Virus record (IMG/VR): IMGVR_UViG_3300037010_002844
Span: 124,001 to 188,000 of that record
Length of the DNA stretch: 64,000 nucleotides
Direction: 5' to 3' (one strand)
The position numbers and the translations under genes are program-made. Positions 37,617 to 63,777 of the stretch are shown here, piece by piece. Every line of letters begins with the position of its first letter. Within the stretch, counting starts at the first letter, position 1. Under the pieces are notes generated by a model, which was not told the origin of the DNA, made no database searches, and worked only from the letters and a program-made list of their open reading frames with translations.

Positions 37617-38356
37617 CTAGTAGGACTTAACGACCTTTCCCGTCGTTCTGTCCCACGCCGCCATCGTGGCATCGATGAACTTGACCTGCTCGTCAAGCTC
37701 TAGTTCTTGATTGTTGACTCGAATTAGAAGGATGCCGCGTTTCACTGCCTCACGTTCCTCAAGTCAATCTCTGAATTGCATCGTCTCGAAATCATGACCT
37801 GCGTGCACCTGTCTGAAGTGCCATTCACCGTCAGATTCGACCCAAACTTTACCGTCGTCAGACACAATGTCAACATCGAACATTACACCGTCGATGGACA
37901 CCTGCTTGTGTCTCTTGAATCCTCGAGACCTCAGCAGTTCTGCCAAGGCGCGTTCTGCTTTTAAGGAAGAATGACGATTATCAACTCTCGATAAAAGAAA
38001 TCGATGCCGTAGCTCAACGTCTTGAGCAAGACGTTGTTTCATTGAGTTACTTTTCTTCTCACTTGATTCTTGCGTGAACTTACGACGAGCTGCACACGCC
38101 TTGGAACATGTTTTCTTGACGTACACTTTTCGTTCCGGTGAAAACAACACCTGAAAAGTAGTGCCACACTCACACGTGCGCTCTTCGGTCACGAGCGTCT
38201 TTTCACCGCACCTCTTTGCAGTGGAGGCGCGAGCGTTCTCTTTGATCTTTTCAAGGCCTTCTTTGAATACGCTTGGGGCTTATGTTGCCACCTCACGTGG
38301 TTAGCTTTAGCTTGAAAAGTCTCAAAGAGAAGTTCACATTCATCACATCGTCACAT
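37617..38356 (-). pseudogene. Decayed Zn-finger + PD-(D/E)XK (Vsr/DUF559-like) endonuclease
   Basis: ATG-TGA then RCDEC..KANHVRWQH (C2H2); frameshift near 38265; CECG..CSKAC; FDVDIV..WVESDGEWH; internal TGA at 37764-37766 followed in frame by LEEREAVKRGILLIRV to TAG 37617. Confidence 0.8.
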
Positions 38357-38402: not shown

Positions 38403-38774
38403 TGGTGGAGGCGCCCGGAATCGAACCGGGGTCCGTAACAGATCCTCTGAGGACCTCATCCACAGGCTTGGTCCGTCTTGTTGCTCAACCTCCGGACGGG
38501 TCTAGCGACGCGAAATTTAGCGAGCTGGTCACCAACTCGACACTACGTTTTACGTCCAGTGCTTTGACGTGTTCCGCTTAACGTCCGGTTCCCCGACGTT
38601 TTCCCTGGCTTTCTGTTTCTAGGCGCCAGGACCCCATTCCTCAGGCCGCGAGGGCGAGAGGAGCAACACCATTGTCGTTGGCGTTTATACGTCACATGGG
38701 TTTTGAACTGGTCCCTCGTGCACCAGTGCCTGCAGTCTACAGTCTCAATGCCACGTCGAAGCCTAGTCGCCCCC
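38403..38774 (-). ncRNA. ssrA: tmRNA (one-piece, 372 nt), tag peptide ANDNGVAPLALAA
   Basis: 5' GGGGGCG pairs with 3' CGCCTCC-ACCA including G3:U; T-arm CCCGG-TTCGATT-CCGGG; internal tag ORF 38682-38641 ending ALAA*. Confidence 0.95.
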
Positions 38775-38836
38775 GTGCATTTGACCGAACAGCTCAGTTG
38801 TCAAAGATCGATGGCCGTAATTATGGCCTCACAGCG

Positions 38837-40795: not shown

Positions 40796-42697
40796 TCAGA
40801 TGACGTTCATGTCCAACACTGTGACGGTCCCGTAGAAGTCCGTGCGGACCATCTTCTTGCCGTATCGGGTCATGACACCCTTGCGCGGCGTGAAGTCTTC
40901 CGGCGCAAAAATCGTCGGGGTGACGATCAGTGGCACGTACGGGGCGTACACGTAACCCGTCTCGAGATAGCTGCCGCCCTTGTAGCCGATCAGGATCTTG
41001 TTGCGGGGGAAGTACGGGTCCTTGTAGACCGTGAAGCGGTTGGACACCGTGCCGATCGCTTCCGCACCAATGGTAAACGGAGAGCCAACCTGTCCCTCGC
41101 CATCGATCGAGAACTTCGGCTTGTACAGCGTGGAAGCCTCGAGGATGGTGCAGACGTCCGGGCCGGTGACCATAAAGTTGGCCGAGCCGCGAAGGGTCTT
41201 ACGGTGAATGGTGTTCGCCACGTCGATGATCGTCTCGATCAACGTCTCGTACCACTCGCGGACCGTGCCCGTGAATTGCGGGCCGATACTCAAGGAGCTC
41301 GCCAGCTGCTGACGGTCACCCGTCAGCTTGTTCACGAAGCGGCCCGGCGAACGCGACCAGAAGAAGTTCGCGCCGTTGGCCTGAGAGACGAGATCATTCA
41401 AGATCTCGCGGTCGATCTCGAGAGCGATCTGCTCCGAAAGGATGCTCGTCAGCTCGACCTCAGCGTCCATCGAGTGGTACGCGTTGAGGTCCTGTGCGAG
41501 TTCAGGCGACCAGCGAGCGCGGAGCCTGCGGGTTGTCGCGGTGATTGCGATCGACTCGATCTTGATATCGATCTCGGGGATGGCCGGAGCCGGGGTCACC
41601 GAGAAGTCCGTCTCGAAGGAGGGAACAGTCAAGGTCGCGCCCGAGCCACCATCGACCATGAGGGCGTCGGCGATCGCCATCGAAACCTTCTGCGTCGCCG
41701 TGTTCAGCGTTGGAACCGAGCCGCCGTTCGACAGCTTCAGCACGAACTGAATGTGCGAACCATTCAGCGGGTTCGGCGTGAAGACCGAGCCGTTCCAGTC
41801 ACCGCGCTTGTTCAGACGACGGAGGTTCAGCAGGCCCTTGCCCGACTGGTAGGAGTCACCCCACTCAACGGCGCCGTTGTTCGCCTGGAAGCCGAAGAGA
41901 GCGATCTGCTCCGGAGCAAGGAAGTCACCCTTCGGGATCTGGGCTGCGATTGCCGCGACCGAGAGGTGGACGAAGGTTACATCCAGGAGGTTGCTGCCCA
42001 GGTCGACCTCAACCTGCGGATCGAACTGCAACATGCGGGCGTTGGTGCCCGAGAAGTCCGTGCTCGAGGCCACGATGCCGCCGGCGGCCCAAGCGTTGTT
42101 GGCACCGGTCCATGCGCCAAGGTCGAGGTTCGAACCCGAGACACCCAGCGAGGCCGAGTGCACCTTCGAGTAACCGACATTCACCAGGTCGTACATACCA
42201 CCCGTGGCGAGTGATCCAGACTGGATGCCCTTGCCGGTCGGGTTGTTGTAGATCGACTGGCCACGCTGGTAAGTCTCGTAGGCCGAGGAGTTACTAAGCT
42301 GCGAGCCAGCATCACCACCAACGTTCGAGCCGTAGGTGTAATCGAGATAGAAGATCAGACCAGACGGTAGGCTCATCGGCTGAATCGAGACAAGCTCGTT
42401 TGCAACGAGGCCACCGAAGACGCGGCGGACGATCGGGAAGGCGATGTTCGAGAAGCCCTGGATCTGACCCGAGGAAGCGACAGCGCCGCCGCCAGTGGAC
42501 AGGGAGTTCGACTCCTTCAGGACCTGGGCAGCCTGGTTCTCCAGGAGCTGCGCCATCGTCTCGCGCTTGAAACCGTCGAGACCGCGGAGCAAGCCAGTAC
42601 GGCTCCACTTCTCAACAAGACGGGCACGCTCAGCACCGACGTGCTTCTCGCGGATGCCCTGGGCCAGCTGGTCCAGTGTAAAAAACTTTGAAGACAT
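40796..42697 (-). CDS. Major capsid protein (T4 gp23-like)
   Basis: LLENQ, FPIVRRVF, VSIQPMSLPSGLIFYL, LRARWSPELAQDLNAYH, EIDREI, YAPYVPL, PRKGVMTRYG. Confidence 0.97.
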   Translation of the reverse strand: MSSKFFTLDQLAQGIREKHVGAERARLVEKWSRTGLLRGLDGFKRETMAQLLENQAAQVLKESNSLSTGGGAVASSGQIQGFSNIAFPIVRRVFGGLVANELVSIQPMSLPSGLIFYLDYTYGSNVGGDAGSQLSNSSAYETYQRGQSIYNNPTGKGIQSGSLATGGMYDLVNVGYSKVHSASLGVSGSNLDLGAWTGANNAWAAGGIVASSTDFSGTNARMLQFDPQVEVDLGSNLLDVTFVHLSVAAIAAQIPKGDFLAPEQIALFGFQANNGAVEWGDSYQSGKGLLNLRRLNKRGDWNGSVFTPNPLNGSHIQFVLKLSNGGSVPTLNTATQKVSMAIADALMVDGGSGATLTVPSFETDFSVTPAPAIPEIDIKIESIAITATTRRLRARWSPELAQDLNAYHSMDAEVELTSILSEQIALEIDREILNDLVSQANGANFFWSRSPGRFVNKLTGDRQQLASSLSIGPQFTGTVREWYETLIETIIDVANTIHRKTLRGSANFMVTGPDVCTILEASTLYKPKFSIDGEGQVGSPFTIGAEAIGTVSNRFTVYKDPYFPRNKILIGYKGGSYLETGYVYAPYVPLIVTPTIFAPEDFTPRKGVMTRYGKKMVRTDFYGTVTVLDMNVI

Positions 42698-47725: not shown

Positions 47726-48580
47726 TCACTCCTCACCGTTTAGTTCGGTACTCAACTTGGTGTAAAGCATGAAGCGAGTCACTGTCTCATCATTGACCAC
47801 ATCGAGGGTCTCGGAGATCAGGCGCTCTCGGGCCTCGTTCAGCTTTTCATTGACGTACTTGTTAGCGTTTGCTGCAGTGTACTCGTCCATTCGTTGCAAC
47901 AGGTCAGACTTGATCTCTGCCAGTTTCTTGTGAATGACGGTCGGATCATCGTGAGCGGCCGAAAAGACATACGCCTTGACGAGTGACTTCTGATCATCGT
48001 TCAGGACACCAGCGTACTTCTCGTTCAACTTCTTTGTCATGACCTTCATCAACAGGCGAGCAGTTCCGTTAGACTCTTCACTGATGACATGATCATCAGC
48101 CTCTGGTCGTTCAGACACCAACCACTGGACCAACTGGTCCTCGTAGGTCGCCATCCTCGACAAGTCCTTGTCGGTCGATCGCCAATCATTGAGCAGCGTC
48201 TGCACGGTGGCATACATCCTGTACTCATTGATCTGTTGATCATAGAAGTTGTCATCTTTGATCGAGTAGTTGATGTGCTTGATGAGCAGCGACTTCTCGC
48301 GGTCCAGAGTCTGGATGTCGTGAGATCGGGCCGCCGAGCGCGCCTCGTTCAGGATGTTAGCAGCGACTGCCTCTGACGTCACCTTCGTCTTAATCAACGA
48401 ATTGACGAGCCTAAACTCTCGGTACAGCTCAGAACCAGGCTTGAAGTGCTTTCGGAGGATCTTCAACGCCACGGCAGACTTCTTCTGGTTGCCCTCGACG
48501 AGGGCGGTCGAAATGGTGCGGACAAGGAACTCGTAGAGTAGTCCAGCATTACGCTTCTTGTTGTGGCCCTTGCTGCTCAT
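47726..48580 (-). CDS. Helical head-assembly-region protein
   Basis: HNKKRNAGLLYEFL; lies between portal and protease. Confidence 0.7.
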   Translation of the reverse strand: MSSKGHNKKRNAGLLYEFLVRTISTALVEGNQKKSAVALKILRKHFKPGSELYREFRLVNSLIKTKVTSEAVAANILNEARSAARSHDIQTLDREKSLLIKHINYSIKDDNFYDQQINEYRMYATVQTLLNDWRSTDKDLSRMATYEDQLVQWLVSERPEADDHVISEESNGTARLLMKVMTKKLNEKYAGVLNDDQKSLVKAYVFSAAHDDPTVIHKKLAEIKSDLLQRMDEYTAANANKYVNEKLNEARERLISETLDVVNDETVTRFMLYTKLSTELNGEE

Positions 48581-51500
48581 GACTCGTCATCCTCGTTGTC
48601 ATCATCGATGATAAGTACATCGCCTTCGTTAATGGCGCTGCCTGTCAGACCCGGTTCGATCGACTCATCAATCTCGATGTTGATCTCTTGGTCCTCTTTT
48701 ATCAAACCATTCTTCGATCCGCGCTCACCAGGGAACTTCTTTTCCCAACTTAGCAACGCAGCGACCACGTCGCCAGGAAGCCGCTGCTGACGTGCGACGC
48801 TTTCGCCGAATGGGTCGCTGACGACAGACTTCAAGAAGTCGGTATCGTAAGGATCCTCCATCGCTCGATTGTCAGTCGAAGTCATCTTCCTGAAGTCAGG
48901 CATGTGCGTCTTAGACGGTCCGTGCGTCAAGTGACGGCTACGGTTGTAGAGCACGCGGTCAAGCTGCTTCTGAGCCTTGACTGGAATCTCGACGTCCTTC
49001 ATGGCGCCGACGCGGAGCCCAAATGTCTCATCGTCATCATTGTCGTCAGCTGACGTCAGGAGCTGAACACCAGGCGTGGTCTCCTCTTCTGGTTCCTCAC
49101 CTGCGTTTTCCTCGGGAGGCGTCTCTTCTCCGCCTGCGGGTTCCTCACCGCCTCCACCTTCATCGCCGCCGCCAAAGAGGTCTTCGCCTCCCCCGCCGCC
49201 ATCCCCTCCAGCACCCGCGCCGGACTCGATGGCTGCGTCAACGACCTTATCTTTCATGCGATTCTTGTCGATCTGCTTGCACTCCTGATCGTTGAGGCCC
49301 CAGATCTCCTTGCGGACAAAGTCCTTATCAATGAAGCCTTCAGGGGCCGAGCCGCCGATCTCAAACTTGGCACGCCACAGTTCTAGCTTCTGTTGCTGTG
49401 CGACAGTCGACGGGTTGGACAGATGCAACGTAAAGTTCTGCAGATCATCACCGTCATACCCGTGTGCATAGAGGTGGATGATCGCCAGCTTGTTGAGCTC
49501 GGCAAGGATCGTCTTCTGAATGACAGCAATGGTACGCGAGAACCTGATGTCCTCCTGCGCCAACGTGGCCTTGCTGCTAAGCATCTCATCGTAACCCAAG
49601 TAGGCGCGTGGGATCTTCAGAGCAGCAAACAGCTTCTTCTGAATGTAGGCCACGTCCTCGACGGCGGCAGTGTTCTGGCCTCCCGCGAGGGTTTCAATGC
49701 GAGTTCCAGACTCTTGGCCACGAACTGGGATGAAGTAGTCCTCATCGACGCTCTGAAACGCAAATATTAGTCCTACACCACCACCACCACCATGAGGTGA
49801 TTGTGCACCTTTCGCAGCATTTTCACCACCCACGGCAAGATTGTGCCATCGATCAACGGTAACACTGTACACATCTTCAGTTGTATCGATGAGCTCAACA
49901 GAAATGACGACGTGGTTGTTCGCACCGTCAGAAGCAACAACGCCGGTGTCAACGTTGTTGACGTACTGACGACCCAAGGCCGCAGGATGGTGCGCAGCCC
50001 AAACTGCCTTCCAGTTAAGGTAATCGGCGATGATGAACTTACCGACGACGTTTTTATGCAGCGATTTCGCGAGATCGTGAGCCAGATGAGCGTTCGTTGC
50101 TGCGTAGAGCTTCATGAACGTTACGTCGGACTTCAACCGTCTCAGGAACGCATCGAGCCCCTCGAACCTACGAAGCGATCTGATGACGTTGATAACGTAG
50201 ACCTGGCACTCAGGCGACCAAACATAGCGCATGTTCTGTCGGGCACGCTCCCTTCGTTCAGGGTCAGCCCACATCGTAGACATCGCTTCAGAACGTTTGA
50301 CGTAATGCTCAGCGTTCGTTATCAACTGCAGGTTGCCAGTTGAGTTGTTGAGCTTGTCAAAGTTGACGTGATGAATTGTCTTTCCCTGCTGTGAGATGTG
50401 CCCGTTCCGATAGACCTCGAGCCCGAACGCATGAGCCGCGATCAACTCGTGGGTAAAGATGCGTGTTCCGAACGATGGATCGAGCACCTTTTCGTAACAG
50501 TGCTTGTCAACTTCAGAAACTTCAGCGCCTGACATCGGTGCATATGTAACGTGCAACGGCATCAAGCTGTCGCCCGAACGTAGATCCTTCGCTTTAACGT
50601 GAGAACCATCACGAAGCATCATCCTATGTTCAGGTGTGACATTGATGACGCCGCCGTCGTCCAGCGTCACCCTGACAAACTGTTTCGTAGTACCTGACTT
50701 CCCGGCCCAGATCACCTTGCCGGGTACCAACCTACCCCCCGCTTCGAGATCAAGGGAATAAGTCTCATGGTCTCGGCGCCCTTCATTCCACTCCTTGACT
50801 AGCTCATCGATCCGCAGCATCCTACCATCCAACAATGGTATCTGAACGTTCGCTGCGAAGCACAGTGGATTGTACCTGAGGTCCACACGACCAGAAGAGC
50901 GATCAATGACCTGATTCGTCCTGAGGTTCTTCCTCTGCTCTTCAACATAAAGAGGCACGTCCTGCGCTGGAACGTTGGCAACGTCGATGTAGAAGACGCG
51001 GCGTTCAGGTGCCCTGACGACGCGGTACACCAACATTGCATCTTCGATGAGGATCAACTGACGCCAAATGCGGCGGGCAGGCTCAATGATCGATGACCCG
51101 TAAGGCAAGAACATGTCGTTGCCCAAGAGCCGAAAGTGAGTGATCTCCCAGTTCTCGAGGACTCGATTACCTAGGGTGACCCAGCGATACCTGACCGCAA
51201 ACGGATCGTCACGATCGTAGTTCTCTTCGCGCTCGATCTCGTTGACAGGGATCGGGAACGCTGAGACGACTCCGTACGTTGGAGAAACGTCATTATAGAG
51301 GAAGAAGTCGCCGTACTTAACAAGATTGCGCGCCCAGGATCGCAGGTTGAACTCGGTGTTCAACGTATTGTAGAAAAGGTCCTCGAGCACCTCGCGAATC
51401 TTCTCATTGTCCGAGTAAATGTGGAGGACGCGGCCTTTCTCATCCTGTGCACACGTTTCGTCGGCATAGATGTCAAGAGCAGCCGCGATCTCAGGAGTAT

Positions 51501-53088
51501 TGTGCGAGATCACACTATCGGTGGCAAAGTTCTTGTACCCGTCAACGGTGAGGTCGTAGAGAGGGATCTCACCGACATACTCAACGGAAACTACCTTACA
51601 GTTGTTGTAAGTCTCCTGAAAGTCACTAAACTTCTTGAAGCCATTCTGCGACAACCTGGAGATAATCGTGTTCTTGTTGGCGCCAAGCTTTTCGGCGAGA
51701 CGAGGCAACGTCACGCTGGGTGTATATGCATCACAGATCTGTTGGAACGTCAGTGAATTACCGTTCGAACCTCGTGGACGACCGCCCTTTCGGACGCTCT
51801 TAATCTGATTGACGGTCACTTCCTCGTCGTGATACCCCATTGTTGAACGCAACTCTGTCCACGACATCCGGGCGCGGCGGGCCAAAAACTTGTCAAGTAC
51901 GTTGACAGTGCAACCGAGCTTAATGCACAAAGAACGCTTCGTGTCACCAGCAGTCATCGAAGACTTCAATAGCTCGAGGCTCAAGTCCCGTGTCAGTAGA
52001 CCGGGTCGGTTGTTGATCATAGAATCAGCTTGACCGCCAGCATATGCCGCAACAAATTTATTGAACGTTGAGAATCCGTGGGTCGCCAATCGTTCATAGA
52101 TCAGGTTCCATGTGACATCAAGAGCATTTGCAATCGCCGGCATGCTGAAACCAACACGTTCAGCAGTCTCTAGGATTCGAGCAAAAGTCACATCCCTGCG
52201 AGCGCCAGGAGCATTGTCACGCATCCGAGCTGCATGGTTCTTCTTGAACTCTTCGATCCACTCACGGTTTTCGGGTGCCCACTTCACCCCGTTGTTGATC
52301 GCGGCGTGGTAACTGTCATGGGCAGACTTCGTCATGATCCTGAGATTTTCAGGACGATTATCAGTCTTAATGAAGTTGATGTGGTGGACAACCTCATCTT
52401 CGTTGAGCTGACGACCGGCAACCCACTCAGCGATCAGTTGGTGCTCTTTGGTCCAACCGCGGAACCTATCGTCCATCGTGTAGATCCACGAGTAGCCAAG
52501 GGTGCCTTCTTTGGCATCAGCAAAGATGTCTTTGCGGTAGAAGGGCATCATTGCATCGCCGGGTTTCAGGTCCTCAACACGACGGTATGTACCGTCACGA
52601 AGCATCAGTCGATGTTCCGGTGATGCAACAATCTCTTTTCCATTATCAAATTTGATCTTCCAGGCACTATCGACACAGGTCTGACGAGCCTGTTTACCGA
52701 ACGCCGGAACGATGCGCTTCAAATTGTGATCGTACGAATAGACAATGAAGATGTGATCCGGATTTTTCTCACACTCTTGCGCTAGCTCACCTATAGTCTT
52801 GAAACCATCTGAGGTTGCGATCTTAGTGTCAATCGCAAGTGAATACTCCATTTCTTGAAAGTCCTGATAGCGCATCAAGCGCTCGCTCAGGTTGTAGGCA
52901 TTTGCCGTGATGGTCGCGTAGGTCGGCGCCAGCGACTTCTGAAAGAGCAACGTGCCTGACGACTTAGTCTTGTCAGCGACCGCGATCGTCGTGTCGGCGG
53001 TGCGGATCTTCTTCTTGATGACAGGACCACTTCGAAACAGTCGCGTCAGTCGTCGGAAAAGGCTTTGAGGTGCTTCTTTTTTTGCCAT
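48577..53088 (-). CDS. Portal protein (T4 gp20-like) with two inteins; ~685 aa after splicing
   Basis: PEIAAALDIYADE, KYGDFF, LIEDAMLVYRVVRAPERRVFYIDV, EDYFIPVRG, KKLFAALKIP, QEDIRFSRTI. Confidence 0.95.
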   Translation of the reverse strand: MAKKEAPQSLFRRLTRLFRSGPVIKKKIRTADTTIAVADKTKSSGTLLFQKSLAPTYATITANAYNLSERLMRYQDFQEMEYSLAIDTKIATSDGFKTIGELAQECEKNPDHIFIVYSYDHNLKRIVPAFGKQARQTCVDSAWKIKFDNGKEIVASPEHRLMLRDGTYRRVEDLKPGDAMMPFYRKDIFADAKEGTLGYSWIYTMDDRFRGWTKEHQLIAEWVAGRQLNEDEVVHHINFIKTDNRPENLRIMTKSAHDSYHAAINNGVKWAPENREWIEEFKKNHAARMRDNAPGARRDVTFARILETAERVGFSMPAIANALDVTWNLIYERLATHGFSTFNKFVAAYAGGQADSMINNRPGLLTRDLSLELLKSSMTAGDTKRSLCIKLGCTVNVLDKFLARRARMSWTELRSTMGYHDEEVTVNQIKSVRKGGRPRGSNGNSLTFQQICDAYTPSVTLPRLAEKLGANKNTIISRLSQNGFKKFSDFQETYNNCKVVSVEYVGEIPLYDLTVDGYKNFATDSVISHNTPEIAAALDIYADETCAQDEKGRVLHIYSDNEKIREVLEDLFYNTLNTEFNLRSWARNLVKYGDFFLYNDVSPTYGVVSAFPIPVNEIEREENYDRDDPFAVRYRWVTLGNRVLENWEITHFRLLGNDMFLPYGSSIIEPARRIWRQLILIEDAMLVYRVVRAPERRVFYIDVANVPAQDVPLYVEEQRKNLRTNQVIDRSSGRVDLRYNPLCFAANVQIPLLDGRMLRIDELVKEWNEGRRDHETYSLDLEAGGRLVPGKVIWAGKSGTTKQFVRVTLDDGGVINVTPEHRMMLRDGSHVKAKDLRSGDSLMPLHVTYAPMSGAEVSEVDKHCYEKVLDPSFGTRIFTHELIAAHAFGLEVYRNGHISQQGKTIHHVNFDKLNNSTGNLQLITNAEHYVKRSEAMSTMWADPERRERARQNMRYVWSPECQVYVINVIRSLRRFEGLDAFLRRLKSDVTFMKLYAATNAHLAHDLAKSLHKNVVGKFIIADYLNWKAVWAAHHPAALGRQYVNNVDTGVVASDGANNHVVISVELIDTTEDVYSVTVDRWHNLAVGGENAAKGAQSPHGGGGGVGLIFAFQSVDEDYFIPVRGQESGTRIETLAGGQNTAAVEDVAYIQKKLFAALKIPRAYLGYDEMLSSKATLAQEDIRFSRTIAVIQKTILAELNKLAIIHLYAHGYDGDDLQNFTLHLSNPSTVAQQQKLELWRAKFEIGGSAPEGFIDKDFVRKEIWGLNDQECKQIDKNRMKDKVVDAAIESGAGAGGDGGGGGEDLFGGGDEGGGGEEPAGGEETPPEENAGEEPEEETTPGVQLLTSADDNDDDETFGLRVGAMKDVEIPVKAQKQLDRVLYNRSRHLTHGPSKTHMPDFRKMTSTDNRAMEDPYDTDFLKSVVSDPFGESVARQQRLPGDVVAALLSWEKKFPGERGSKNGLIKEDQEINIEIDESIEPGLTGSAINEGDVLIIDDDNEDDES
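49753..50862 (-). mobile_element. Intein 2 in portal (370 aa, HNH-containing, Cys1...Phe-Gln/Ser+1)
   Basis: YNPL|CFAANVQIPLLDG, block B VTPEHRMM, IHHVNFDKLNN, VYSVTVDRWHNL..IFAFQ|SVDEDYF. Confidence 0.88.
51499..52842 (-). mobile_element. Intein 1 in portal (448 aa, HNH-containing, Ser1...His-Asn/Thr+1)
   Basis: EMEY|SLAIDTKI, ASPEHRLM, VHHINFIKTDNRPENL, LYDLTVDGYKNF..SHN|TPEI. Confidence 0.92.
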
Positions 53089-60197: not shown

Positions 60198-60776
60198 TCA
60201 TATGTTCATGAGACAGGCAGCACGGGCAATAACGTACGCATCGGTTGCATCACGCGACCAATCGACGGAGGTACCGTTCTTCTTGGTCGGCCACTTCACA
60301 TGTGACAAATCGTGCTGTGCCATGTGATCGAAGACCTGCTCCTTCTGGCTCTTGCCTGCTACCGAAGGCTTCTGCAGCTTCAAGCCACACTGCTTGCGGG
60401 CCGTGGGTGCAGAGATGTAATTGGGCTCTACGTTGAAGGTGTTCCGTGAGATATACGAGACGATCCCGTTGAACCTCAGCAACGAGGCAATGGTCGTGGC
60501 AGACGACATCCCCTGTCGAAAGCCCAGTAGAGGTTCTTCAATTGCGACGGCAATCTCGGCATTAGCGTGATTGACGTGCAATCCGTTTAGGTAGTGAGCC
60601 ACCACGTCGGCCTTGTCCCACAGCGTCTTACACTTCTTGAACTCGATATGATCGAGGTGGACAATGTGATTGCCAGTCCCGTCGGGGACCACGTCACGGT
60701 CGATCAAACAGACGCCCGTAATCGACGTAGAAACATCGAGTCCCAACACGTAACGGCGTTTCATCTTCAGTGGCAT
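60198..60776 (-). CDS. RuvC-like Holliday junction resolvase
   Basis: VLGLDVSTSITG, AIEEP, DATDAYVIA. Confidence 0.85.
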   Translation of the reverse strand: MPLKMKRRYVLGLDVSTSITGVCLIDRDVVPDGTGNHIVHLDHIEFKKCKTLWDKADVVAHYLNGLHVNHANAEIAVAIEEPLLGFRQGMSSATTIASLLRFNGIVSYISRNTFNVEPNYISAPTARKQCGLKLQKPSVAGKSQKEQVFDHMAQHDLSHVKWPTKKNGTSVDWSRDATDAYVIARAACLMNI

Positions 60777-60816: not shown

Positions 60817-61233
60817 TTACAATAGACCTAGGCCCTTCAATTCACGCTCTGTGATTACTCGGAGGGCCACGCCGTGATCACGGCACCATATTCCAGCGGC
60901 CTCTAGCTTCTTGACAACCGTCGGACGGGTCAACCGCTTGGAAGGCTTGATTTCGACCACCTCGATGCGACCATCATCATACTCGATCTTGAAGTCTGGG
61001 ATATAACGGCGAACGCGGCCCGTCTTTTTGTTACTGATGTAGTCGATGGTAAATGCCTCGTACCACCAGGTCTTCACTGAAGCCTCACCGTCGAGGTACT
61101 CCATGAACTTGAGCTCCCATCCAGAGCGATACTTACACGCCGCGCCCGTCTTCGTCGAGGTGTATGTCCCCGTGATGTAGTGACCCTTGCGCTTCCGGCG
61201 CTTACGCTTGACGGGTGCTTTCTTGGCGGCCAT
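60817..61233 (-). CDS. Head completion nuclease (T4 gp4/TnsA-N-like)
   Basis: YRSGWELKFMEYLD, WWYE, RRYIPDF, EIKP, ITE. Confidence 0.85.
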   Translation of the reverse strand: MAAKKAPVKRKRRKRKGHYITGTYTSTKTGAACKYRSGWELKFMEYLDGEASVKTWWYEAFTIDYISNKKTGRVRRYIPDFKIEYDDGRIEVVEIKPSKRLTRPTVVKKLEAAGIWCRDHGVALRVITERELKGLGLL

Positions 61234-61269
61234 CTGTGGATTGTATTGCGTCCCACCAGATGAGCAACA

Positions 61270-63777
61270 TCAAAAGTCGATCCCGACTTTGAAAAGAATC
61301 CGATCCCCGTGGCGCTTGACGATGGGCTGAGCGAGTTGGGTCTTCGCCACCACGTTCAAGTTCTCGTCATGAAAATTGAGGCCAGTGATGTAGACGTAAT
61401 TGGGATCGTTGTCAGTCTTGAAGCCCGAGGCAGGTAGCAGCTTGAAGTTCGGGTTGGAACTTGAGTTGAGCTGATTTTGGGCCGCAATCACCTCTAGCTT
61501 TAGCGAGTGAATCGACTGGACACCTCTAAACGAGACCTCGAAGTGATCCTTTCCGTAGAAGTAGAGGTGCGGGTTCTTGATGACAATGATTCCCTCGTCG
61601 TAGAAGACGTTGCCCACAGAGTTCCATGTGGATGCTGAGGTGAAGGTGTCGGCGCGATAGATGTTACCGTTGCCGTCGTCCTTCAGGGTCATCGGCACAC
61701 GGCCATTTGAGCCAGTCATGCCGCTCTCGTAGAGCTCAAGGGTGCCAGGCATAATTCTTTGGCCATAGTACAGATTACTGACGTCAAAGAATGTCACCTG
61801 GTTGGATGAGGGATCACGAGTACGTTGGTAGATCGTCAGCGGGGCATTGTTTTCAACGCCCGGAATGTAAGTGCCCGATGCCACTGATTGAGTTAGCTTA
61901 CGCATGAACCCAACGTAGGCTCGGCCAGGCTGATTACCCGGTTGCTCTGGCGTGAACCCGATCAACTCGTCAATGAACCTATCGGCATCTGCGGCCGCCA
62001 CACCCTCCACGTCTTCAAAGGCGCTGCCAAACAAGATGGAGGCAGTAGACAGCATGTTGCCTAGGTGAACGTAGCTCAGTTCTTCGACCCCGTCGTCACC
62101 GACCATGATGGTCCTAAGGCTCTCGCTCGCCAACAGTTCATAGGCAGGGATAAAGTTGCCATCGTCGCACGGCAGGATCAGCAAGTTCCTAGCACGGACC
62201 TTGGGATCATCGTACAGAAAATCGTTGGCGGCTCGAGCCTCTGTGGTGTAGTCAATGACCGACGCCGACAGATCGTGAGCCCGAGGGAAGACGTCGCTCG
62301 CAAAGTCACGCAGGTAATTTTCAATGTTGATGTAGTGACCATTGACGCCGAACGACATGGCCACGTTGAACGGTGACTGCGTGGTGCCGTCGACCTCAAA
62401 GAAGGGCGTCTGCATGATGCCACCGTGAGTGCCGACGAACTGCCTGAAGGGCGATTCCTGAATGAAGAACGGAGGCAAATAGAAGGCGACCAGGTTCCAG
62501 TCGAGCAACTTGGGCCCCTGAGACGCAGAAAACACGATGTCATCGTTGCTCATGTAGAAGCGCTTGAGCGCCACGTCATGAAGTTCAGCATTCAACGGGT
62601 GATTGAAGGCTACCGCAGCTGAGATTGGCGCGTCGATTCCAACCGTGCCATTGAGTTGCGTCAGACCCTCACGGAGGGCCGGATCTGCCGCAAAGAACAA
62701 TGATTGCTCATTGTTGCCTTTGTTGGTCCCCTCCCAATAGTTGCCAACGCACAGAACCGATGGCATGCCCTGGGCAGGGTCGCCAAACAACAAGGGCGCC
62801 ACTGTGCCGCTTGGAATGACGAACAACCCCTTGTCAACGCCGTCAATGTTGAAGCTGCCAGTTCCTTGGTTGATGAGACTCGTGCCCCAGCGAACCACCA
62901 CGTGGTGCCAGCGATTCCACTGCAACGAGTTATCGTCAGACAAGAACACAAGATCGTTCGGATAATTTCCTGGCAATGCCTCTGACGGCCGCGTGTCTGC
63001 GCTATGGCTCAACTGGAGCAATAGACGATAGCCAAGAGGCCGACCATTTTGGTCCTTCGCTGAGCCAGTGACCAACGACAAGGCATAGCACGATGAAACG
63101 TGCATGATGGTGCCAGCCTTGAACTGGCCATTGGGCTCCTCTGTCTGGTAACGTGGATTGATGTAGAAATCGAACGAGAATGAACCACTCAATGAGTAAT
63201 TGAGCGCCACGTAACCCTCGTGAGCCTGGTCGCTCATAGAGACATCGTAGTTCGGATACAACAGCACTGAACTCGTCGGAACAGAAGATGCGGTGAAGAA
63301 GTTCAGGGAGTTGTAGTTGGAGTAGGCCCAGTGCGCCGACGGGTACGACGTCCTGTAGTATTTCATCAAGATGTCCTTGACGATCAACTTCCTCGTGGTG
63401 TTTGAGCTGAAGTTGACGGAAGGCGTGAACCTGATGATGTCGAGAATCTTCTGCTTACGCGCTGAGATCGCCTGGCTGTCGACCTTGGACAAGTAGTCAT
63501 CCAGCATCCCAGGAAACTTCTCTGCGATGGTACTGACGTACTTAGCCAGACGCCCCAGCATCGTCAACTGACCGATGGTTGCGTTGAGGTCAGAATCGTC
63601 TTTCGTCGCATCAACGAACCCGGGTAGGGAGGTGACGTCTTTTTCGATCGACGACCGTCGAGCAAAAACGTGAACTGACCCAGTCACGCCCATCGACGAC
63701 GAGGAATATTGCCTAATCGGATTGGCGATGACGCTGAACGACTCTAGGTCGTTCTGGCTAACGGGGGTGAGTGACAT
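61270..63777 (-). CDS. Virion/baseplate structural protein with LamG-like domain
   Basis: WHHVVVRW LamG motif; C-terminal DDGNGNIY..VGNVFYDEG..YITGLNFHDENLNVVAKTQLAQP. Confidence 0.65.
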   Translation of the reverse strand: MSLTPVSQNDLESFSVIANPIRQYSSSSMGVTGSVHVFARRSSIEKDVTSLPGFVDATKDDSDLNATIGQLTMLGRLAKYVSTIAEKFPGMLDDYLSKVDSQAISARKQKILDIIRFTPSVNFSSNTTRKLIVKDILMKYYRTSYPSAHWAYSNYNSLNFFTASSVPTSSVLLYPNYDVSMSDQAHEGYVALNYSLSGSFSFDFYINPRYQTEEPNGQFKAGTIMHVSSCYALSLVTGSAKDQNGRPLGYRLLLQLSHSADTRPSEALPGNYPNDLVFLSDDNSLQWNRWHHVVVRWGTSLINQGTGSFNIDGVDKGLFVIPSGTVAPLLFGDPAQGMPSVLCVGNYWEGTNKGNNEQSLFFAADPALREGLTQLNGTVGIDAPISAAVAFNHPLNAELHDVALKRFYMSNDDIVFSASQGPKLLDWNLVAFYLPPFFIQESPFRQFVGTHGGIMQTPFFEVDGTTQSPFNVAMSFGVNGHYINIENYLRDFASDVFPRAHDLSASVIDYTTEARAANDFLYDDPKVRARNLLILPCDDGNFIPAYELLASESLRTIMVGDDGVEELSYVHLGNMLSTASILFGSAFEDVEGVAAADADRFIDELIGFTPEQPGNQPGRAYVGFMRKLTQSVASGTYIPGVENNAPLTIYQRTRDPSSNQVTFFDVSNLYYGQRIMPGTLELYESGMTGSNGRVPMTLKDDGNGNIYRADTFTSASTWNSVGNVFYDEGIIVIKNPHLYFYGKDHFEVSFRGVQSIHSLKLEVIAAQNQLNSSSNPNFKLLPASGFKTDNDPNYVYITGLNFHDENLNVVAKTQLAQPIVKRHGDRILFKVGIDF

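Follow-up and report, generated by a model that had tools for sequence, protein, structure and literature searches.

A one-piece tmRNA gene downstream of the capsid gene in a clade of uncultured T4-like jumbo phages

Transfer-messenger RNAs (tmRNAs) encoded by phages have been described on several occasions. Huge phages were reported in 2020 to carry them, some together with SmpB (PMC7162821); a survey of isolate phages found a tmRNA in 402 of 18,146 genomes (2.3%), with “maintaining the hijacked machinery” as one of the proposed roles (PMC9004378); and individual carriers include the Stenotrophomonas myophage Marzo (PMC8928761) and the Sinorhizobium jumbo phage AP-J-162 (PMC11242549). A tmRNA is also a routine annotation in individual jumbo and T4-like genomes. 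Here we describe a one-piece tmRNA (ssrA) gene in a 64-kb stretch of DNA (hereafter, the window) comprising bases 124001-188000 of the 309,433-bp IMG/VR virus record IMGVR_UViG_3300037010_002844, which is 91% complete according to CheckV. The premise of the original prediction made on the window, that some large phages carry ssrA, is documented in the literature (PMC7162821, PMC9004378), and the window tmRNA therefore belongs to a known kind. What is added here is its clade-wide synteny, a covariation-tested fold, selection on its tag at the peptide level, complete genomes free of smpB, and a negative outcome for host inference. To our knowledge, no phage tmRNA has been tested genetically.

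In the window, ARAGORN detects a single tmRNA; it occupies 38403-38774 of the minus strand and is called non-permuted. An Rfam cmscan search places RF00023 at identical coordinates (93.1 bits, with a gathering threshold of 47; E = 5.9e-35), with an untruncated match to model positions 1-374 of 374, so that ARAGORN and the Infernal tmRNA model alike recover a full-length one-piece gene. It is 372 nt long, with a GC content of 58%. As read from the sequence, it has a 7-bp acceptor stem, GGGGGCG/CGCCUCC, with G.U as the third pair, a T-arm composed of CCCGG, UUCGAUU and CCGGG, and a discriminator A followed by an encoded CCA at the 3′ end. The acceptor stem, T-arm, encoded CCA and LAA-ending tag open reading frame (ORF) described in the original prediction are thus all present within these coordinates, the strand being minus. 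The parts of the gene, in window coordinates, are as follows.

38403-38774, minus strand: one-piece tmRNA (ssrA), from ARAGORN and RF00023, with CCA at 38403-38405
38768-38774, minus strand: acceptor stem, 5′ strand (RNA 1-7), pairing with RNA 362-368 (38407-38413) and including the alanine-identity G3.U
38414-38430, minus strand: T-arm (RNA 345-361), with a 5-bp stem and UUCGAUU loop; covariation
38728-38755, minus strand: 5′ strands of H2, namely H2a (RNA 20-26) and H2d (RNA 40-47); covariation
38434-38440 and 38460-38467, minus strand: 3′ partners of H2 (RNA 335-341 and RNA 308-315, respectively)
38693-38727, minus strand: pseudoknot PK1 (RNA 48-82), with stem a 48-52/64-68 and stem b 55-62/75-82, directly before the resume codon
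38641-38682, minus strand: tag reading frame (RNA 93-134), with GCC resume codon, 13 codons ANDNGVAPLALAA and UGA stop, from ARAGORN
38639-38661, minus strand: helix H5 hairpin (RNA 114-136), with the stop codon within its 3′ strand; read from the sequence
38471-38630, minus strand: downstream domain (RNA 145-304), with hairpin A 145-171 and pseudoknots B 176-201, C 205-235, D 236-271 and E 273-304

The features that mark RF00023 members, i.e. a full-length model match, a tRNA-like domain, an mRNA-like domain, PK1 and downstream pseudoknots, are all found here. The layout is that of bacterial one-piece SsrA: a tRNA-like domain with G3.U and T-arm, H2, and PK1 before the resume codon, and then a short tag ORF with a hydrophobic xAA degron, a stop-codon hairpin and downstream pseudoknots. 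Unlike its bacterial counterparts, however, the window tmRNA resides in a lytic-type phage without smpB, the phage tags span 13-15 aa as opposed to 9-11 aa in most bacterial ANDN tags among the matches listed, and the post-tag region appears to consist of one hairpin and four small pseudoknots instead of the textbook three, with two of the helices being weak. The gene order of two-piece tmRNAs (RF01849/RF04321) is not seen, as the sequence is collinear with RF00023 positions 1-374; the control, a tmRNA from Rhodobacter phage RcRudolph (see below), was called permuted by ARAGORN.

The gene lies on the same strand as, and 2 kb downstream of, a T4-type capsid gene, which served as the synteny anchor.

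40796-42697, minus strand: T4-type major capsid gene (Gp23), PF07068 with E = 1e-74, PHROG 138 (major head protein)

A search with the capsid protein yielded more than 560 related viral contigs, 80 of which, with capsid identity of 64-86%, were used as relatives for comparison. In the phage database, the capsid is most similar to that of an uncultured 484-kb phage (48% identity), with cultured phages at 43% or less; the clade is one without a cultured member. In 13 capsid-anchored relatives a tmRNA was identified with ARAGORN and an nhmmer profile, invariably in the same orientation as the capsid gene and 1.9-7.6 kb downstream of it. Among relatives whose downstream flank extends for 4 kb or more, it is present in 11 of 37, and in six of the eight with capsid identity of at least 77%; five large incomplete relatives without a tmRNA near the capsid gene have none in the rest of the available sequence either. 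A pattern scan of viral contigs added further members, nine of which, having sufficient flank, show the capsid gene (74-95% identity) 2-4 kb upstream; among these nine are complete genomes of 340 kb and of 369 kb, the latter bounded by terminal repeats. Overall, at least 27 related phage contigs carry the tmRNA, and its capsid-linked position is seen in at least 22 contigs from different metagenomes. The clade is composed of uncultured T4-like jumbo phages of about 300-370 kb from sediments and microbial mats. With more than 27 sequences, a fixed position, a supported fold and smpB-free genomes, it makes a good set for asking what a phage gains from a rescue RNA of its own. The variable capsid-tmRNA spacing in the relatives suggests that small, possibly mobile, genes come and go in this interval.

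The helices were defined on the window RNA against close relatives, and then tested on 24 distinct sequences of the clade aligned with MAFFT (91 pairs). Standard pairs occupy 80.4% of the cells, versus 68.0 ± 0.5% in 500 shuffles, none of which reached the observed value, and 35-42% when the registers were slid; compensatory changes occur at 62 of the 91 pairs, versus 44.6 in shuffles and 31-40 in slid registers; and the covariation score is 0.362, versus 0.166 and 0.08-0.11, respectively. G.U occupies the third position of the acceptor stem in 22 of the 24 members, and later positions of the stem covary, as in GGGAGUG/CACUUCC and GCGCUGG/CCAGUGC. The T-arm is 98.3% paired across the 24 sequences, with compensatory changes at three of its five pairs, H2a is 94.6% paired (five of seven pairs compensatory) and H2d 93.2%, and in PK1 stem a is 98.3% paired (four of five compensatory) and stem b 89.9% (six of seven). 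Parts of H5 are paired in 73-96% of the cells. Further downstream, compensatory changes affect all six pairs of hairpin A, all five in each stem of pseudoknot C, all six in stem 1 of pseudoknot D and all five in stem 2 of pseudoknot E. The region after the tag appears as a hairpin that covaries and, beyond it, four small pseudoknots; of these four, three are well supported. The possibility entertained in the original prediction that the pseudoknots might be unfoldable is not borne out.

The tag opens at GCC (nt 93) and runs for 13 codons, ANDNGVAPLALAA, to a UGA stop at nt 132-134, ending in LALAA. In all 27 clade sequences the frame begins with a GCN codon located between nt 90 and nt 94 and continues for 13-15 codons, closed by TGA in 23 cases and by TAA and TAG in two each. 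The first four codons have experienced only synonymous substitutions, with the following usage in the 27 sequences.

Tag codon 1 (Ala): GCC 24, GCG 2, GCA 1
Tag codon 2 (Asn): AAC 26, AAT 1
Tag codon 3 (Asp): GAC 17, GAT 10
Tag codon 4 (Asn): AAC 23, AAT 4

The C-termini are LAA in 21 sequences, IAA in three, HAA in two and LVA in one. With ANDN fixed at its start, a ClpX-type xAA at its end and free variation in between, the tag bears the mark of selection as a peptide, and the compensatory changes in the helices, taken together with the synonymous-only changes in the tag, indicate that the phage lineage has long kept the gene under purifying selection. In bacteria, one-piece ANDN tags are short and vary little, with ANDNLALAA (18), ANDNSYALAA (13) and ANDNFALAA (11) among the matches listed. 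Viral contigs display more than 80 different ANDN tags, mostly of 12-15 aa and highly diverse, and at least 118 viral contigs, many of them 100-530 kb in length, carry one-piece ANDN tmRNAs.

The tmRNA is located about 162 kb into the 309-kb record, the DNA of which is found in sediment and microbial mat sequencing runs. In addition to the capsid gene, the window contains other genes of the T4-type structural set, and on the side of the tmRNA opposite to the capsid there are virion structural and tail-fibre-like genes.

48577-53088, minus strand: T4-type portal gene (Gp20), PF07230 with E = 1.5e-61, also PF14890 and PF13392
28819-30129, minus strand: virion structural protein gene, PHROG 1645 with E = 8e-64

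A tyrosine integrase (PF00589) is absent from the whole record. The stretch from the capsid gene to the tmRNA is present without differences in contigs from other sediment and mat runs, two of which, being a possible source of the record DNA, are not independent; a fourth study contains 89% of the sampled words in fragmented form. Phage genes on both sides, the lack of an integrase and the recurrence of the same stretch make a host flank, an att remnant or a chimera very unlikely. In agreement with the original prediction of a complete, phage-encoded one-piece tmRNA, the gene is found in a virus record that lacks an integrase, is surrounded by genes for T4-type capsid, portal and virion proteins, and is syntenic in relatives, and its identity as a real, selected, phage-borne tmRNA is nearly certain. 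The portal ORF (1503 aa) carries an intein splicing domain (PF14890) and an HNH insert (PF13392), and matches several HNH PHROGs. Directly downstream of the tmRNA, an ORF at 37764-38192 (minus strand) has weak DUF559 and REase_MTES_1575 matches (E about 2e-3).

Like the tmRNAs of huge and isolate phages, the one described here belongs to a large myovirus-type genome in which many tRNAs are accompanied by a single tmRNA and translation genes, and for which a role in translation maintenance has been proposed. It differs in belonging to a separate uncultured clade, in the absence of SmpB, which is present in some huge phages, and in that a fixed position downstream of the capsid gene and a covariation-tested fold are documented here but not in those papers. 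A second group for comparison is formed by alphaproteobacterial two-piece tmRNAs and phages carrying such molecules (RF01849/RF04321; Melnitz and pelagimyophages, PMC9004378; RcRudolph), which have similar ANDN tags of 12-14 aa with an ALAA end and an mRNA-like domain giving weak nucleotide matches to that of the window; however, the window gene is continuous and follows RF00023 from end to end. RcRudolph was the sole, weak BLASTN match among 50,697 phage records, limited to the tag region; the match did not lead to a relative and revealed a permuted tmRNA instead. This cultured Rhodobacter phage carries an unannotated gene with the tag ANDNVRMDAQALAA (RF01849, 94.8 bits; RF04321, 103.6 bits) at L009:1230-1594 on the plus strand, which corresponds to approximately 49090-49454 on the minus strand of OP009285.1 and lies partly under the hypothetical coding sequence RCRUDOLPH_61. 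Unannotated tmRNAs can therefore hide beneath “hypothetical protein” calls.

The original prediction noted the absence of smpB from the window, and this absence extends to the entire 309-kb record, in which SmpB (PF01668) is not detected at E of 1 or below; it is also absent from five relatives, two of them complete genomes, and SspB is absent as well. Without a phage smpB, the established pathway would require SmpB of the host and, likewise, host alanyl-tRNA synthetase (AlaRS) and EF-Tu. The phage does carry other translation genes. The record has 49 tRNA genes according to ARAGORN, and inside a tRNA cluster at G000:C1:260529-261347 (minus strand) it encodes a protein similar to release factor 1 (RF1) that retains the PPT and GGQ motifs, lacks the N-terminal domain and matches prfA positions 157-330 with 190 bits, under the equivalog cut-off. 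A CCA-adding enzyme (PF01743) is encoded at G000:C1:60570-61302 (minus strand); CCA is encoded in the window tmRNA, and most clade tmRNAs are without it, a situation which the presence of this enzyme fits. The PF01743 match comes in two pieces in different frames (model 1-85 at 61045-61302 and model 72-125 at 60570-60728), suggesting that the gene is split, frameshifted or interrupted by an insertion. Outside the window, the tRNA set includes two adjacent tRNA-CUA (amber suppressors, labelled “Pyl” by ARAGORN) and one tRNA-UUA (ochre), at G000:C1:228801-228949 and 288775-288850, the suppressor calls being those of ARAGORN alone, as well as an odd 96-nt tRNA with a four-base anticodon call at record positions 265523-265618. 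The structural genes in the window are open under code 11, and wholesale recoding is not seen.

We consider it likely that the locus provides a functional phage-encoded one-piece tmRNA that keeps ribosomes recycling and clears aborted products during infection; the physiological role, taken by itself, is probable to about the same or a slightly lesser degree. The phage gene would be transcribed and the transcript processed to ends at G1 and CCA, after which host AlaRS would recognize G3.U and charge the RNA with alanine, and host SmpB and EF-Tu would bring it to ribosomes that have stalled on mRNAs that are broken or lack a stop codon. Translation would resume at GCC, append ANDNGVAPLALAA and terminate at UGA, freeing the ribosome and leaving the truncated product with a ClpXP-type LAA degron. 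The phage could benefit from turnover of the ribosome pool at a time when host transcription and the supply of stable RNAs are presumably off and mRNA decay is heavy, and the tmRNA may be viewed as part of a carried toolkit that also includes the tRNAs, the CCA-adding enzyme and the RF1-like factor. Charging, dependence on SmpB and the timing of expression are steps that we infer from the molecule and its surroundings.

Several observations weigh against this proposal. The tmRNA was not found in the majority of the more distant relatives, and hence it is dispensable for the wider group. Its RF00023 score of 93 bits is far under the 168.9 bits obtained for a one-piece tmRNA on a phage-looking contig from a metagenome-assembled genome (MAG), indicating that it is divergent, and its fit to the SmpB or AlaRS of any given host is presumptive. 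Two parts of the fold are weak (61-68% of the cells are paired in pseudoknot B and 53.5% in stem 2 of pseudoknot D), partly because the different middle region of one sub-clade defeats the MAFFT alignment, and the z-score of the nested minimum free energy is only -1.72, although this value is uninformative because the method cannot model pseudoknots. No convincing sigma-70 promoter or intrinsic terminator was found flanking the tmRNA on its strand, none of the RNA sequencing runs searched contains the locus, and the benefit to the phage is something that we infer rather than observe.

The same molecule and pathway could also serve in counter-defence, with the extra tmRNA neutralizing RNA-based host immunity either by rescuing ribosomes after cleavage of mRNA or tRNA by defence nucleases or by tagging, for degradation, toxic effectors made from stop-less mRNAs. 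The structural evidence applies equally to this scenario, and the phage genome has many tRNAs, which are a known answer to tRNA-cleaving defences. A concrete target is also known from the DRT2 system, in which a stop-less mRNA gives rise to the effector Neo; the authors argue that ArfA releases Neo without a tag, and that the tmRNA route, by which it would be tagged for degradation, is not the one used (PMC11100668). Nevertheless, no defence or anti-defence gene was identified beside the tmRNA, the neighbours of which are structural genes and ORFans, our literature search found no paper tying a phage tmRNA to defence, and a fixed clade-wide position in a structural module looks like housekeeping and not like an arms-race island. 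Counter-defence would be a special case of the rescue activity, to which nothing in the locus points specifically, and we regard it as unlikely. Slightly less likely still is a programme in which the tmRNA, the suppressor tRNAs and the truncated RF1-like factor jointly rewire termination and rescue, so that host or defence proteins (for instance, DRT2 Neo) would be tagged or read-through products would become degradable; were this true, the long and variable phage tags of 13-15 aa would reflect tuning to host adaptors and proteases.

It appears more doubtful that the tmRNA remodels the proteome by tagging host proteins for ClpXP so that their amino acids are recycled, with amber and ochre suppressors driving read-through of host TAG and TAA codons and sparing phage genes that end in TGA. 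Such selective tagging of host proteins was proposed for phage Melnitz (PMC9004378), and the two tRNA-CUA and one tRNA-UUA would supply the suppressors; TGA is the stop codon in 75% of the 313 phage ORFs and in 82% of those of at least 300 aa, in addition to the preponderance of UGA as the tag stop (23 of 27 clade members). The TGA bias is, however, compositional, with TGA accounting for 79% of out-of-frame stop triplets, and the phage RF1-like factor would read UAA and UAG, thereby opposing suppression. Finally, tmRNA genes are common prophage integration sites, ssrA fragments occur in prophages (PMC9004378) and IMG/VR contigs may contain host flanks, but a captured host ssrA, an att-site fragment or misjoined host DNA without function for the phage is extremely improbable and, in our view, refuted by conservation and covariation, as the gene is full-length and not a 3′ fragment, is embedded 162 kb inside a record with structural phage genes on either side and no integrase, is syntenic in at least 22 independent contigs with compensatory and synonymous-only changes, and is approached by bacterial tmRNAs with at most 78 bits among the matches listed, as opposed to 150-314 bits within the clade.

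The original prediction tentatively pointed to a Myxococcota/delta-type host on the grounds of a one-piece form, an ANDN...LALAA tag and high GC. The GC content was overstated, being 52-60% in the window and 55.6% in the record. Myxobacterial genomes have a GC content of roughly 68-70%, and the phage, at about 55%, lies far lower. To assess the distribution of the one-piece ANDN form, one genome per bacterial species was scanned, with a downstream T-loop required and permuted genes thereby excluded. There were at least 120 matches, and in these such tmRNAs occur in at least 10 phyla; among the taxa represented are Myxococcota, Gemmatimonadota, Acidobacteriota, Oxalobacteraceae, Endozoicomonas, Methylophaga, Clostridia, Spirochaetota, Nitrospirota, Cloacimonadota, Desulfovibrio relatives and others, and the combination is therefore not diagnostic of a phylum.

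Sequence similarity is no more specific. With the phage-clade profile, the top bacteria among the matches listed are four Polyangia/Myxococcales MAGs at 73-78 bits; Massilia has 72.8 bits, and members of the clade itself reach 150-314. Over the ends that can be aligned, the bacteria compared (among the matches listed) all show an identity of 0.65-0.70, and clade sequences one of 0.74-0.88. BLAST comparison with five bacterial genomes of different phyla aligned only the universal 36-nt T-arm/acceptor end, and thus was unable to rank donors. Thirty alphaproteobacterial two-piece tmRNAs reached at most 42 bits against the clade profile with both pieces summed; the alphaproteobacterial sample consisted of 151 genomes, 149 of them with a match, and the unpublished G055 was counted in the tally only. 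At the level of the tag, the alphaproteobacterial peptides ANDNYAPVALAA, ANDNRAPVALAA and ANDNNAAPVALAA tie with Myxococcaceae tags at 10 of 13 identical positions, revealing no preference for Myxococcaceae. Hence neither the nhmmer profile, nor end identity, nor sub-profiles of the mRNA domain, nor tag identity separate Myxococcota from Oxalobacteraceae, Alphaproteobacteria or others, and with a widespread form, non-specific scores and tied tags the Myxococcota inference is left unsupported. Phage Melnitz carries a tmRNA of alphaproteobacterial type, yet infects a gammaproteobacterial host, and its tmRNA differs in class from that of the host (PMC9004378). The host phylum cannot be predicted from the tag of a phage tmRNA, or from whether the molecule is in one piece or two.

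One apparent host clue was an alphaproteobacterial MAG with the sole bacterial ANDNG tag among the matches listed, and it was rejected when the tmRNA turned out to lie on a mis-binned phage fragment. This MAG has a two-piece tmRNA of its own (294 bits) on a large contig. The second tmRNA is the one-piece molecule of 168.9 bits mentioned above, with the tag ATANDNGAAALAA at L198:41-398 (minus strand), on the 12.5-kb contig L361 (G015:C29:1-12485). L361 is rich in ORFans and includes DHFR and a sigma-70-like gene; it has release factor-like and sigma-like genes in common with the window phage, and its homologue of the RF1-like protein is 47% identical to that of the phage. The gene content shared with the phage, together with the two-piece tmRNA belonging to the MAG itself, indicates that L361 is a mis-binned phage fragment. 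Through mis-binning of phage contigs, unannotated tmRNAs can also inflate MAGs.

A conserved sequence motif is found upstream of the gene.

38797-38806, minus strand: upstream motif CTTTGACAAC, with TTGACA at 38799-38804, then 24 nt to the mature 5′ end

Its conserved form CTTGACAAC, which includes TTGACA, is shared by seven members (the window, L014, L015, L021, L025, L033 and, as a variant, L043) and ends 24-31 nt before G1. It represents a possible promoter element, judging from its sequence and position, and no -10 hexamer matching the TTGACA motif was found by a sigma-70 scan. A second motif, GTGGTAGATATAG, is located about 60-130 nt upstream of the tmRNAs in L015, L021, L025, L033, L043 and L050, after the stop codon of the upstream ORF, and is absent from the window and from the full 309-kb record; this motif may serve as a promoter or regulatory site specific to the clade. 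A sigma-70-like factor is encoded by the phage at G000:C1:282448-283092, and was recognized solely by its similarity (31% identity) to the sigma-70-like ORF of L361. TTGACA hexamers are found 272 times in the genome, about 2.3-fold over the 116 expected from base composition.

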